Assembly: GCA_964234715.1 (NCBI GenBank)
Contig: OZ174280.1
Direction: 5' to 3' (one strand)
Length of the DNA stretch: 64,000 nucleotides
From: Podarcis melisellensis
Lineage: Eukaryota
In this document: positions 47,801 to 60,179 of the stretch, piece by piece
Layout: the number at the start of each line of letters is the position of its first letter
Position numbering within the stretch: the first letter of the stretch is position 1
The notes under the pieces: generated by a model
The model's input: the letters and a program-made list of their open reading frames with translations, nothing else
Told to the model about the DNA's origin: nothing
Databases searched by the model: none
Position numbers and translations under genes: made by a program

Positions 47801-50800
47801 ACGGAAAACAAATAATTGCACACGAGCTACTTTCATATTCATGCCCCAAATGTCTCCTAGATCAGAGAGCGATAAAACAAAGAGGGAAATGATTCTGAAG
47901 CAACTTCACATAAACAGTATAACAAGAGAAGCAGCCCCCAAGCTGACTTCCTTTTAGACTCTGTGCTTTTCTTCTGTGTCTTTTTCTTCATTCAGTAGCC
48001 ATAAACCTATTGCCCTATTTTGTTCCACATCAACATGGCTTCTACTGTAGTTGAGAATCTTACTTGTATTGGGCCTCATTCAGTTTTATTCCCAATATTG
48101 TGGTGATTACTTTCAGTGCCTAATATTTTCAATGGCAATTTTGTGGAGAATGTCCTACTGAAAAAGGGAGGTGCAACACCATTGCTCACTCCAGATACAG
48201 AAAAGGAGTAGGGATGCAGTACTTGGCCAAAGATATCAGGTAGAAAGATTCCATTCAGCTTTCTGTCATCCTTTTAGACTACCTCATGCCAGTCTCCAGC
48301 TTGTGGTGGTCGACTTATTATTTGGTATGAGCCTATTTTAGTTTTGCATGTTGCAGAGTTGTCCTGTAGCTTGCTAATGAAATACACATGATTCACCAGA
48401 TCCTCCCAAGGGGAACCTTCATGCATATAAATTAAACTCAGCAAAGGTATTTTTCCTTCCTATGTCCTTTCTGATTTGTCACATTTTACTTACTCTTACC
48501 CTTACATAATCAACTACCTTTAACATTCCTTCTCTGCTCCCCTAACACCCAACCGGGCAGTATATATGGTTCTTCAAGAAACCCCTTTCTTGCCTTTGTG
48601 CTGCAGTATTCTCACATGCATCAACCTTCCCCTCTTTTTTCATTTCCCCCCATCTCTCCCTGTTACCTTCCTGGCTGTGGCACTGGCAGCACCCAGAAAC
48701 AGAAACCAAAGGCTTCTCCATACCTTCCTAGGTAAATACGAAGTATAGTTTGGATTTTCCTTTGCAGGGGTATATTTCTCTCCACATTCTGCTGTCACAA
48801 TAGAAATTGGCAATGAGACAATTGCTCTACTTGACTTTAGTAGCCAGATATACAGTATATCAATATACAGTGGATCAATTGCTCTCTACTTTTCTTGTAA
48901 CCCAGCTTTATTGCTTAAACTAGTAAGGTTCTGATTTGGTGGGGAACTGCCATTTTGCTGATCAAGAAGGGGAAAGGTGCTGCTTGCTGCTGAAGGACAG
49001 GGACAATAGCTGAAGAGCAGTGGGTTAATAAGCCTCTGATTATTTCAGGAAATTTGAAGCAGTGCTCGAGTGGCCACAATCCCAGCAGAATGAAAGAAGA
49101 CAATTAGGGTTCATCCTTGATAGAGTAAAAGGTGCCCCACCGGGAGATGGGGCTGTCCGGCTAACTGGTTACCATCAGAAAACTGGTCAGGTATGGAACA
49201 TGTGTGGCTCTGTCAATAGCCCCAGTGTCATAGTTGGTGTTCAGCTAGCACCCTGGTTCAGCATTTTAGCAGAACCATCCTGGAGTTCTTTATTATTTTA
49301 GGAAGAAACACCAAGAAAGCTTAAAAAGGAAGTTGGACCATGTGTTACATTTTTCTCAAACTTGATTTCAGGTGATTGCCACCAAGGACTCGGGACTGAA
49401 TTACTGCACCGATTCCATGAGATCCAATATTAAACATGGCTACTTCGTGTTTGGAGAACAGGAGGTATAGAATGGTGCTTTGGCAGGAGAGTGTTAGGCT
49501 TGGAGATGGACTTAGGTTTACATCCCAGTCCAGCTGGGAAGTTCACAGAGTGTCCTCAGACAGGTTATTATCCTTGCACTGATTGGATGGTTACTTAGCA
49601 CTACCATTGCTGCAAGCGCTAGAATACTGTACAGTGGTATCTTGGGTTACAGACGCTTCAGGTTACAGACTCCGCTAACCCAGAAATAGCACCTCGGGTT
49701 AAGAACTTTGCTTCAGGATGAGAACAGAAATCGTGTGGCAGCGGTGCAGCGGGAGGACCCATTAGCTAAAATGGTGCTTCAGGTTAAGAACAGTTTCAGG
49801 TTAAGAACGGACCTCCAGAATGAATTAAATTCTTAACCCGAGGTACCACTGTATTTGTTTCTCAGAGGCCAAGTTTGCTCACACCTCACCACAACTCAGT
49901 CACCTGTTACCAGAAATGGTAGACCAGTTCTCTGATGCTAGATAAGTATTTACATTGGTTTAGAGTATTTACTTTCCCCAATCCTGGGGATAATTCTTGT
50001 GGATGCCCATGCTTAACTATAAGAAGCACTCATGTTGCTTGTTTGCAAAATATGGGCTTTGGGTTTTCTTGCCAATGGTGTAAAAGCAGTTCTGAGCTCA
50101 GAGAAAAACATGCTCATTCCTAATCCATTAAAACAGTTAGGTGGTTTTTGAGTATGGTGTATGGCAGAGGGAACTGAAGGGTAGAAGGTACTGGAAATTA
50201 TAGCACTACTCTTGGCTCACCTGAACTGCTTCTTTTTGTTTCCTTCAGGAAACCTTCTGGGATGTTGAGCCACAGCAGGACATGATCCTTATTGCTCGCT
50301 TTTACCACTGGCCCAGTGGGAGGGTGGCACCCACCCCCTGGGACAAAGGATTCAAGCCTCAACACCAGCCACTACTAGGGAGTGATGAATGGCTGGCTGC
50401 CTGGGCTGTACTCAGACTGATCAAGATGTATGAATCCCATAAAGTGATGGTTACAGGTATGCTGCAGGCATTTCTGGTTGCCTGGTGCTATGATTCCCCA
50501 AAGGAATTAAGGTTTTCCTATTACTAGTCTAGGAATTAAGTTTTCTGCATTCTGCTTTCACAGGTGCAATGAAGAAAGGGGAACCTGGGATGCCTGTCTG
50601 GAACACAGGGACTCATACACTGACTCTGTATCATGGCCCTGTGCCACCTGTTGTAGCTCTGTCAGTGATGGTAAGTCCACTCCTGTAAAGCAAACAAAGG
50701 TTAACCAGGTAGGTAAAGTATGCCAATATTAATACCAGCAAAAGGCTGAAGAGATGTTAAACATCTAATGACTCGTTCAGTCTTGCTGCTCTTATTGATG

Positions 50801-59800: not shown

Positions 59801-60179
59801 AGGACAAAATTTAAATGAGTTTTCTGTTTGTAGCTTCTGTCTCAAATTTTGGATTATTAATATAAGATTTAGAACGTAGAATGGTTTGGTGGTGCTGTGT
59901 GCCGCTTATGTGCTGCTCAGTGGCGTAGTGTGGGTTGTCAGCACCCGGGGCAAGGCAAGTAATCTGTGCCCCCTAACCCGTGGATTTTAGCACTCGAGTG
60001 CGAGCACGCGCCCCCCAGATGTTGCGCCCGGTGCGGCCGGCACCCCCTGCACCCCCCACACTACGCCACTGGTGCTGCTTACTTCTTACTGGTCCACATT
60101 CTCCATAAGCAGTGCAGGTTTAATTGTGACTTGCATGTTTTTCTTTCAGACAAAGTTGAAGGCATTGGAACAAATTTAA
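35855..60179 (+). CDS. CCDC17: Coiled-coil domain-containing protein 17, predicted long form (31 exons, about 1454 aa); a short mammal-like form would end at TGA 46136-46138 (693 aa)
   Basis: Exons 1-14: 35855-36043, 36420-36557, 37453-37515, 38259-38376, 39165-39324, 39548-39667, 40110-40243, 41166-41300, 42357-42583, 42950-43035, 43408-43623, 44132-44354, 44720-44830, 45977-46134. These match recalled human CCDC17 motifs (C..C.M.FRS..LL..H...[74 protein letters not shown]...[18 protein letters not shown]). The gene is tail-to-tail with NASP, as in human. Joining to exons 15-31 (listed separately) is inferred from splice phase. Confidence 0.85.
40393..40415. repeat. (CA)n microsatellite
   Basis: About 11 AC units. 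Confidence 0.9.
41408..41543. mobile_element. Palindromic hAT-type MITE
   Basis: Near-perfect hairpin CAGTGTTTCCCAACCTTGGG...CCCAAGGTTGGGAAACACTG, with an 8-bp TSD ACCTAAGC / ACCTTAGC (one mismatch). Confidence 0.85.
49049..60179 (+). CDS. C-terminal extension of CCDC17 (exons 15-31, about 760 aa, three C2-like repeats), or possibly a separate uncharacterised gene
   Basis: Exons 49049-49190, 49372-49464, 50249-50456, 50564-50670, 51150-51290, 52143-52297, 52604-52724, 53522-53638, 54050-54147, 54240-54452, 54810-54984, 55874-56056, 56858-57109, 57780-57848, 58891-58968, 59266-59370, 60150-60179. All are GT-AG with polypyrimidine tracts, every phase is compatible, and there is no internal stop over 2287 nt. 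The last exon is uncertain. Confidence 0.8.
49632..49851. mobile_element. Tc1/mariner-type MITE (same family as 5365-5605)
   Basis: TIRs CAGTGGTATCTTGGGTTA...TTAACCCGAGGTACCACTG with TA duplication. Interior collinear with the 5365 copy. Confidence 0.8.
51500..52030 (-). mobile_element. CR1 LINE ORF2 fragment
   Basis: Minus-strand translation [64 protein letters not shown], which are CR1 RT C-terminal motifs. Confidence 0.8.
53010..53412 (+). mobile_element. Decayed SINE with CR1-like 3' tail, interrupted by an L2-like fragment (about 53096-53308)
   Basis: GAATACCAGTTGCTG...GGTCCTGCT resumes after the insert as TGCTTGCAGGCTTCC...GGCATCTAGTTGGCCACTATGAGAACAG.ATGCTGGACTAG. Related pieces occur at about 6480-6550 and 30280-30370. 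Confidence 0.45.
55072..55432 (-). mobile_element. Full-length Sauria SINE (Squam1)
   Basis: Minus strand begins GGGACACAGGTGGCGCTGTGGGTTAAAG...GGCGGTTCGAATCCC (tRNA-derived A and B boxes) and ends in (ACCTTT)n. 15-bp TSD AGAGATGGAAGTAAG at 55057-55071 and 55435-55449. CpGs largely intact. Confidence 0.92.
55787..55827. repeat. (TG)n microsatellite
   Basis: About 20 TG units, about 46 nt upstream of the acceptor at 55874. Confidence 0.92.
56619..56671 (+). other. Degenerate partial duplicate of the 3' end of exon 56858-57109 (pseudo-exon candidate)
   Basis: 56637-56669 GCATTTACTCACTGCC-TTATACCAGGGGGCTCC versus 57069-57102 GCATTTACCAACTGCCCTTATACCAGGGGGCTCC. Bounded by T8-ACAG and GG|GTATGT. 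Confidence 0.6.
58582..58746. mobile_element. Tc2/pogo-like MITE
   Basis: TIRs CCGTATTTTTCGCTCTATAA...TTATGGTGCAAAAAATAGGG, TA on both sides, internal ATAACACGCAC repeats. Confidence 0.7.
59599..60095. repeat. Long imperfect inverted repeat (arms about 150 nt, 26-nt loop)
   Basis: Left arm 59599-59760 is the reverse complement of 59787-59917 plus 60080-60095; the right arm is split by a MITE. Confidence 0.85.
59918..60071. mobile_element. hAT-type MITE
   Basis: TIRs CAGTGGCGTAGTGTGGG...CCCACACTACGCCACTG with a perfect 8-bp TSD GTGCTGCT (59910-59917, 60072-60079). CpG-rich. Confidence 0.88.

Follow-up and report, generated by a model that had tools for sequence, protein, structure and literature searches.

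We analyzed the gene CCDC17 on the plus strand of a 64,000-nucleotide stretch of DNA from the lizard Podarcis melisellensis (contig OZ174280.1), hereafter called the window. Downstream of exons 1 to 14, which make up the mammal-like short form of the gene, the window carries 17 further exons between positions 49049 and 60179, hereafter called the extension. The best explanation of our data, and one that we consider very probable, is that the extension is the 3' half of CCDC17 and that the ancestral protein had four C2 domains; mammals would keep only the short form. Use of the exon 14 donor at position 46134 adds 762 to 776 residues with three C2 domains. The long gene model is already public as CCDC17 in several species, including one of the same lizard genus. 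An initial annotation, made from the letters of the window, had described the region as unrecognized, which proved wrong, NCBI already holding long CCDC17 models, among them the Podarcis lilfordi protein P0112 with the same exons. As a whole, that earlier interpretation is partly supported. We found no paper on the long form of CCDC17, on its C2 domains, or on its apparent loss in mammals.

In the model that we propose, the 17 exons together with a 42-nucleotide (nt) linking exon (48690 to 48731) would form the 3' half of the CCDC17 gene. With the exon 14 donor in use, the transcript would continue for another 14 kilobases (kb) and encode a protein of about 1450 to 1470 residues, in the order C2H2 zinc finger, coiled coil, proline-rich stretch, and four C2 domains of the AIDA/DOCK/PI3K type. 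One of these domains would lie in the mammal-like half and three in the extension, where units 3 and 4 would be separated by a helical linker and followed by a short conserved tail. With the donor unused, a stop one codon later would give a short protein of roughly 690 residues, which most pipelines call CCDC17.

Exon chain and conservation of the extension

To rebuild the chain of the extension, we combined open frames with splice-site scores and kept track of the phases; short joins across exon borders were translated to check the frame. The exons at 55 to 60 kb were placed by homology to gecko CCDC17, a splice-score scan alone being insufficient there. The 17 exons total 2287 nt with no stop and no phase conflict, all of their borders are AG/GT, and the phases are consistent throughout. 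CCDC17 starts with exon 1 at 35858, where the zinc finger is encoded, and exon 14 ends at 46134; exons 1 to 14 total 2075 nt, and the complete open reading frame with the extension has 1453 codons plus a stop. The AG that ends exon 14 and the G at 49049 form an arginine codon, with matching donor and acceptor phases. The initial annotation had claimed the same chain and sum, the same arginine codon, and a full-length protein of about 1454 residues, all of which we recovered. The exons are as follows, with splice joints taken from contigs of the public runs X1, X2, and X11.

45977 to 46134, plus strand: CCDC17 exon 14, last of the mammal-like short form; donor AAAAG/GTGAGA; joint 44830>45977 in three runs, donor 46134 used in X2; tblastn matches to P0112, P0001, and P0113
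47516 to 47596, plus strand: alternative 81-nt exon between exon 14 and 49049, with two in-frame stops in translation; joints in X2 only
48690 to 48731, plus strand: 42-nt in-frame exon linking exon 14 to the extension; joints 46134>48690 and 48731>49049 in X2; matches gecko CCDC17 (P0001) residues 453 to 466; DNA kept in Elgaria
49049 to 49190, plus strand: extension exon 1 of 17, begins C2 unit 2; joint 49190>49372; tblastn matches to orthologues
49372 to 49464, plus strand: extension exon 2; contig joints on both sides; orthologue match
50249 to 50456, plus strand: extension exon 3; joints 49464>50249 and 50456>50564 in up to three runs; orthologue match
50564 to 50670, plus strand: extension exon 4; joint 50456>50564; orthologue match
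51150 to 51290, plus strand: extension exon 5, completes C2 unit 2, plus proline-rich linker; frame, splice sites, and phase; orthologue match
52143 to 52297, plus strand: extension exon 6, begins C2 unit 3 (conserved motif); orthologue match; 37-sequence alignment
52604 to 52724, plus strand: extension exon 7; orthologue match
53522 to 53638, plus strand: extension exon 8; orthologue match
54050 to 54147, plus strand: extension exon 9; orthologue match
54240 to 54452, plus strand: extension exon 10, completes C2 unit 3, plus linker; protein search with the open stretch around it gave 73 matches, best E value 7e-36; tblastn
54810 to 54984, plus strand: extension exon 11, helical linker; orthologue match; fold model
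55874 to 56056, plus strand: extension exon 12, begins C2 unit 4; orthologue match
56858 to 57109, plus strand: extension exon 13; splice score; orthologue match
57780 to 57848, plus strand: extension exon 14; splice score; orthologue match
58891 to 58968, plus strand: extension exon 15, completes C2 unit 4; orthologue match
59266 to 59370, plus strand: extension exon 16, conserved tail IDQSYLP...; splice score; orthologue match
60150 to 60179, plus strand: extension exon 17, last coding exon, TKLKALEQI and then the stop TAA; C terminus kept in orthologues

The C terminus ...LALEQI is common to six squamate proteins and reads LILDQI in the alligator. At extension exon 13, a second acceptor 21 nt upstream (56837) would add seven residues (NLQLVFQ) in frame; the orthologues fit 56858.

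For homology, the exons of the window were searched singly; the folds were computed on database orthologues in place of the whole protein, namely, P0112 and alignments of proteins from the databases. An exhaustive protein search with the open stretch of the longest exon (54214 to 54453) recovered 73 proteins, many of them 1300 to 1480 residues long and matching the query near residue 1100. In the other direction, tblastn of orthologues onto the window gave colinear matches to every exon with E values down to 1e-55; with P0112, P0001, P0007, P0010, and P0129 as queries, exons 1 to 14 and all extension exons were covered. The P. lilfordi protein P0112 (1340 residues) contains both halves with the same exon set and is 98 to 100% identical over most exons, while the per-exon identity of the window to other squamates is 64 to 100%. 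When 37 extension sequences ranging from lizard to protist were aligned, 17 columns were invariant and long motifs were conserved. Among alligator, bonefish, amphioxus, nemertean, and hemichordate, the extension scored 0.63 to 0.92 bits per residue, compared to 0.35 to 0.66 for the N-terminal half. Judged by these alignments, the extension exons are evidently real coding exons that match far above chance, and the extension is the better conserved half of the protein.

One could object that these open frames arose by chance or are relics in decay and give no working protein in the lizard, as the low RNA depth and the truncated snake models (both described below) might suggest. This is effectively refuted already: 17 of 17 exons are open, with intact borders and consistent phases, the identities to squamates and the invariant columns in the alignment of 37 species, lizards and a protist included, are as given above, and extension exons are found spliced in RNA contigs.

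Predicted fold and distribution of the long form

Residues 580 to 1340 of P0112 were modeled by AlphaFold2 with the 37-sequence alignment. The resulting model (predicted local distance difference test score, pLDDT, 81.9; predicted template modeling score, pTM, 0.73) contains three beta-sandwiches at residues 18 to 206, 252 to 407, and 522 to 706, a helical linker at residues 453 to 497, and a tail. Unit 3 folded alone reached a pLDDT of 89.8, and its best match was the C2 domain of AIDA (2qz5; Z 13.5, 136 residues, root mean square deviation 2.7); the C2 domain of DOCK180 (3l4c) matched with Z 13.1, and DOCK8 and PI3K C2 domains also aligned. In all, 83 chains had Z values of at least 8, and C2 domains fill the top 50 of those listed. 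In the ESM Atlas, unit 3 superposed on the CCDC17_C domain of short CCDC17 with a template modeling (TM) score of 0.76 and on a model named "putative nephrocystin 4" with a TM score of 0.72. Foldseek with the extension retrieved multi-C2 proteins (ferlins, DOCK, PI3K, and AIDA) as well as C2-bearing chains of ciliary central-pair structures, the latter a likeness at fold level only.

The units are also related to one another by profile comparison, with E values of 1e-7 for units 2 and 3, 2e-8 for units 3 and 4, and 1.5e-5 for units 2 and 4. Unit 1 is related to the others weakly (E values from 3e-4 to 1e-2), and its profile matches unit 4 of the protein of Chromosphaera perkinsii, a unicellular relative of animals. 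The extension is thus predicted to fold as three C2 domains of the AIDA/DOCK type. From the fold models and the unit profile comparisons, the four C2-like units named by the initial annotation therefore hold, as the three sandwiches of the extension, the superposition on CCDC17_C, and the profile links all indicate. The Pfam domain CCDC17_C is the first of the four C2 units of the ancestral protein. Pfam searches with ten single-exon translations gave nothing, nor did PDB sequence searches with P0112 or with the 37-sequence profile.

Single proteins with both halves of CCDC17 were found in sauropsids (Sphaerodactylus, Podarcis, Varanus, Chelonia, Trachemys, and Alligator, the last a GenBank entry of 1390 residues), amphibians (Lissotriton and Phyllobates), fish and other deuterostomes (Albula, 1454 residues; Branchiostoma, 1476 residues; and Ptychodera), and lophotrochozoans (Owenia, Tubulanus, Saccostrea, Mytilus, and Macrostomum). 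The fused proteins are 1230 to 1570 residues long. In C. perkinsii, the four unit profiles located units 1 to 4 in order on one protein of 1570 residues. Because fused proteins thus extend from lizards to lophotrochozoans and Chromosphaera, the fused four-unit CCDC17 is evidently the ancestral form and predates animals. The idea of an ancestral full-length protein, put forward in the initial annotation, is upheld by this series from lizard over amphioxus and lophotrochozoans to a unicellular holozoan.

No mammal or bird was present among the named homologues of the extension, which were annotated proteins only (55 of 55 in one search and the nameable part of the 73 in another), and no bird was among the top 120 matches to the N-terminal half of CCDC17. 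The source animals of the named matches have ciliated epithelia, and arthropods and nematodes are absent from this set, a pattern seen incidentally and not by systematic test. Human CCDC17 is about 620 residues long. A short form as the sole form of mammals agrees with this length and with the Pfam name CCDC17_C for unit 1. The loss in mammals asserted by the initial annotation is consistent with the lack of a mammal among the named homologues; as worded there it was overstated, the evidence for it being absence from protein databases and the known length of the human protein.

Outside mammals, snake CCDC17 models (P0152, P0153, and P0155 to P0157; about 918 residues) stop after the fifth extension exon, and teleost models are mostly short, with Albula and Conger retaining the extension. 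The pattern in snakes, birds, and teleosts hints at repeated loss.

Splicing of exon 14 and the number of genes

If the exon 14 donor is read through, the protein ends ...PNKR and then meets a stop one codon on (AGG TGA). The short vertebrate CCDC17 models, from turtles, lizards, snakes, frogs, sharks, and salmon, all end at this donor with ...R and a stop. We considered this stop as a special conserved signal and rejected the idea: any GTRAG donor in this phase reads AGG TRA, and the shared ending is therefore automatic. The segment from 46126 to 46138 combines an AATAAA with the exon 14 donor and the read-through stop, all three overlapping; in Elgaria the AATAAA is missing (CATAAATCTAATGAAAG/GTGAGA). 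Whether the donor is used or not may be an old switch between short and long forms, of which mammals kept the short one and lost the better conserved half, a view toward which we lean slightly.

Contigs of four public runs from related animals were placed on positions 44700 to 50680. Four predicted joints, all GT..AG, were matched exactly, in up to three runs from three organisms: 44830>45977 (X1, X2, and X11), 49190>49372 (X2), 49464>50249 (X1 and X2), and 50456>50564 (X1, X2, and X11). In X2, the exon 14 donor at 46134 was joined either to the 81-nt exon or to the 42-nt exon, and each of these was then joined to 49049. The 42-nt exon has no stop and preserves the reading frame. Gecko CCDC17 has the same 14 residues at this place, and the DNA of the exon is kept in Elgaria multicarinata (locus positions 9455 to 9496), where the acceptor is AA instead of AG. 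The protein models of Podarcis and Varanus join exon 14 directly to the extension, whereas the gecko model and the RNA contigs include the 14 extra residues. The joints of the 81-nt exon (46134>47516 and 47596>49049) have sides of 28 letters; this exon is possibly a poison exon, ending the protein soon after exon 14. No single contig spanning both halves of CCDC17 was present among the contigs of the four runs.

The joining of exon 14 to 49049 by small exons in X2 is good but not final evidence. The extension exons are thus probably part of the CCDC17 transcription unit, as the initial annotation had held, in that exon 14 is spliced onward to 49049 in related lizards. The direct join that it had drawn fared less well, since the path runs through a 42-nt (or 81-nt) exon that it had missed.

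A further X2 contig, over 46169 to 46784, has a depth of 427, compared to about 8 on CCDC17 exons. It departs from the window at 46169, immediately upstream of a strong acceptor, ttctcctttcag/G. Its remaining 423 letters were not found in the window, and the contig may represent a repeat or the terminal exon of a different transcript.

As the initial annotation had anticipated, databases divide the locus into CCDC17 and an uncharacterized LOC gene. RefSeq does so in Elgaria, Rhineura, Heteronotia, Alligator, Xenopus (ccdc17.L, 784 residues), several frogs, Amia, Pristis, and Conger. At the Elgaria locus, CCDC17 (702 residues) is followed 3.3 kb on by LOC134413366 (742 residues) on the same strand and then by NASP (SHNi-TPR) on the opposite strand. 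Such models, some of which have a Met leader of their own, would fit a locus with two genes, in which CCDC17 ends at exon 14, the downstream gene has its own promoter, and the joined RNAs are occasional read-through yielding little protein. The AATAAA just before the exon 14 donor would fit as well, as would an X1 contig that runs through this donor and indicates that short or unspliced RNA is also present.

We nevertheless regard two genes as unlikely. The ATG exon of LOC134413366 (Elgaria locus positions 10001 to 10029) lies within a lineage-specific insertion of about 400 nt that the window is without, and it is spliced into the first extension exon by the very acceptor and phase that exon 14 would use. 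A separate conserved start exon for the extension was rejected on account of this insertion, and the split models have mutually dissimilar Met leaders. In the window, no in-frame ATG was found before extension exon 2 and the frame is closed just upstream of 49049; nor is there a CpG island at 46 to 49 kb, in line with the initial annotation, which had seen neither a CpG island nor a convincing separate start. Moreover, window and Elgaria agree in that the exon 14 donor and the 49049 acceptor have the same phase, the gecko protein and Elgaria DNA retain the 42-nt linking exon, and the invertebrate and protist orthologues are single proteins with all four units. The RefSeq split reads as an annotation effect or, at most, as a lineage-specific start.

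Several points count against a single four-C2 gene whose short form alone persists in mammals. The runs are presumed to be RNA, which is a guess, and come from relatives and not from the animal of the window. The joints that link exon 14 onward come from one run, with a depth of 2 to 7 and short sides of 28 to 31 letters; such sides are what an assembly at k=31 leaves at a branch point, but they are at or under the 31-letter bridging limit of the tool. The direct joint 46134>49049 was not seen in the four runs, the X1 contig reads through the donor, and the RefSeq splitting could reflect real separate transcripts. Among Pfam C2 models, none scored above threshold (PI3K_C2, 15.6 to 20.1 bits against a cutoff of 26.4). 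That mammals keep only the short form is inferred from absence among annotated proteins and from the length of the human protein, not from a genome search, and the putative function of the C2 row is pure inference.

Neighboring features, putative function, and known systems

Beyond the end of CCDC17, the minus strand carries a NASP-like last coding exon at 61920 to 62123, so that CCDC17 and NASP stand tail to tail. A search of 45 to 61 kb with Rfam gave no match. The intron between extension exons 2 and 3 holds, at 49630 to 49853, a very high-copy repeat resembling a short interspersed nuclear element, with summed word depths of 25,000 to 230,000 in four of four runs; a second copy, 80% identical, lies at 5363 to 5615 of the window. 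Positions 55000 to 55600, within the intron that separates extension exons 11 and 12, are CpG rich (GC 0.63, CpG observed/expected 0.84), the sole such stretch inside the gene, and could be a repeat or an internal promoter. A CpG island at 32700 to 33100 (GC 0.52, observed/expected about 1.0), 2.8 kb upstream of CCDC17 exon 1, may belong to a neighboring gene.

Calcium-independent binding to membrane lipid or to partner proteins is usual for C2 domains of this type. Long CCDC17 would act in motile cilia, where two chains would dimerize through the coiled coil, and the calcium-independent C2 row would dock onto membrane lipid or axonemal partners. In such a dimer, eight C2 domains might anchor membrane or cargo to structures of the axoneme; this tether is a guess that may as well be wrong as right. 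In humans, CCDC17 serves to mark ciliated cells (PMC13096173), and a study that cites an airway cilia proteome counts it among the ciliary tip proteins, copurifying with DNAAF9 in mature airway cells (PMC12700831).

CCDC17 thus routinely marks multiciliated cells, and no mechanism is known for it. If four C2 domains belong to the ancestral protein and the missing half is the better conserved one, its function should be sought in the long form, for which the multiciliated skin of Xenopus or amphioxus would be suitable systems. In that case, work on human and mouse CCDC17 would concern a remnant, the C2 row would have to be studied in frogs, lizards, or invertebrates, and mammals would be a natural experiment in living without the extension. 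For annotation, the locus is a clear case of pipelines cutting one conserved gene into CCDC17 and an unnamed LOC gene, and the Pfam label CCDC17_C reflects the short form, the sole form found for mammals. The value of these results lies in a corrected gene model and in one evolutionary observation that we did not find in the literature; they do not describe a new kind of system.

The long form resembles the scaffolds NPHP4, RPGRIP1/RPGRIP1L, and CC2D2A in combining a coiled coil with several C2-like domains. Language-model features place the extension near nephrocystin-4 clusters (score 0.93 to 0.94, NPHP4_C2_2nd), which is a lead only. Pfam gave no NPHP4, RPGRIP1L, or CC2D2A domain match in the extension at E values up to 0.1, so the likeness is one of fold and features only. 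In contrast to these transition-zone scaffolds, human CCDC17 is listed at the ciliary tip (PMC12700831). The initial annotation had proposed an uncharacterized ciliary candidate parallel to such scaffolds; its link to cilia stands and was already published, whereas the parallel is weakened by the tip listing and by the lack of sequence homology to those families. The C2 domains of AIDA, DOCK (DHR-1), and PI3K share the eight-stranded beta-sandwich fold of the extension units and differ in sequence, with an identity of only 8 to 16%, lipid binding by the extension being putative.

Short CCDC17, as found in mammals and in most RefSeq vertebrate models (about 600 to 700 residues; PF28454, CCDC17_middle_coil, and PF28455, CCDC17_C), corresponds to exons 1 to 14 of the window and differs from the long form in being without the 762 residues that carry three more C2 domains. 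The position tail to tail with NASP is the same at the Elgaria locus as in the window. Overall, the closest known systems are the long CCDC17 proteins already in the databases, namely, P0112 (1340 residues), XP_048352163.1 of Sphaerodactylus townsendi, KYO48008.1 of Alligator mississippiensis (isoform C, 1390 residues), KAI1892076.1 of Albula goreensis (1454 residues), and CAH1243654.1 of Branchiostoma lanceolatum. They represent the same gene as that of the window, with both halves colinear exon by exon and nothing essential different.

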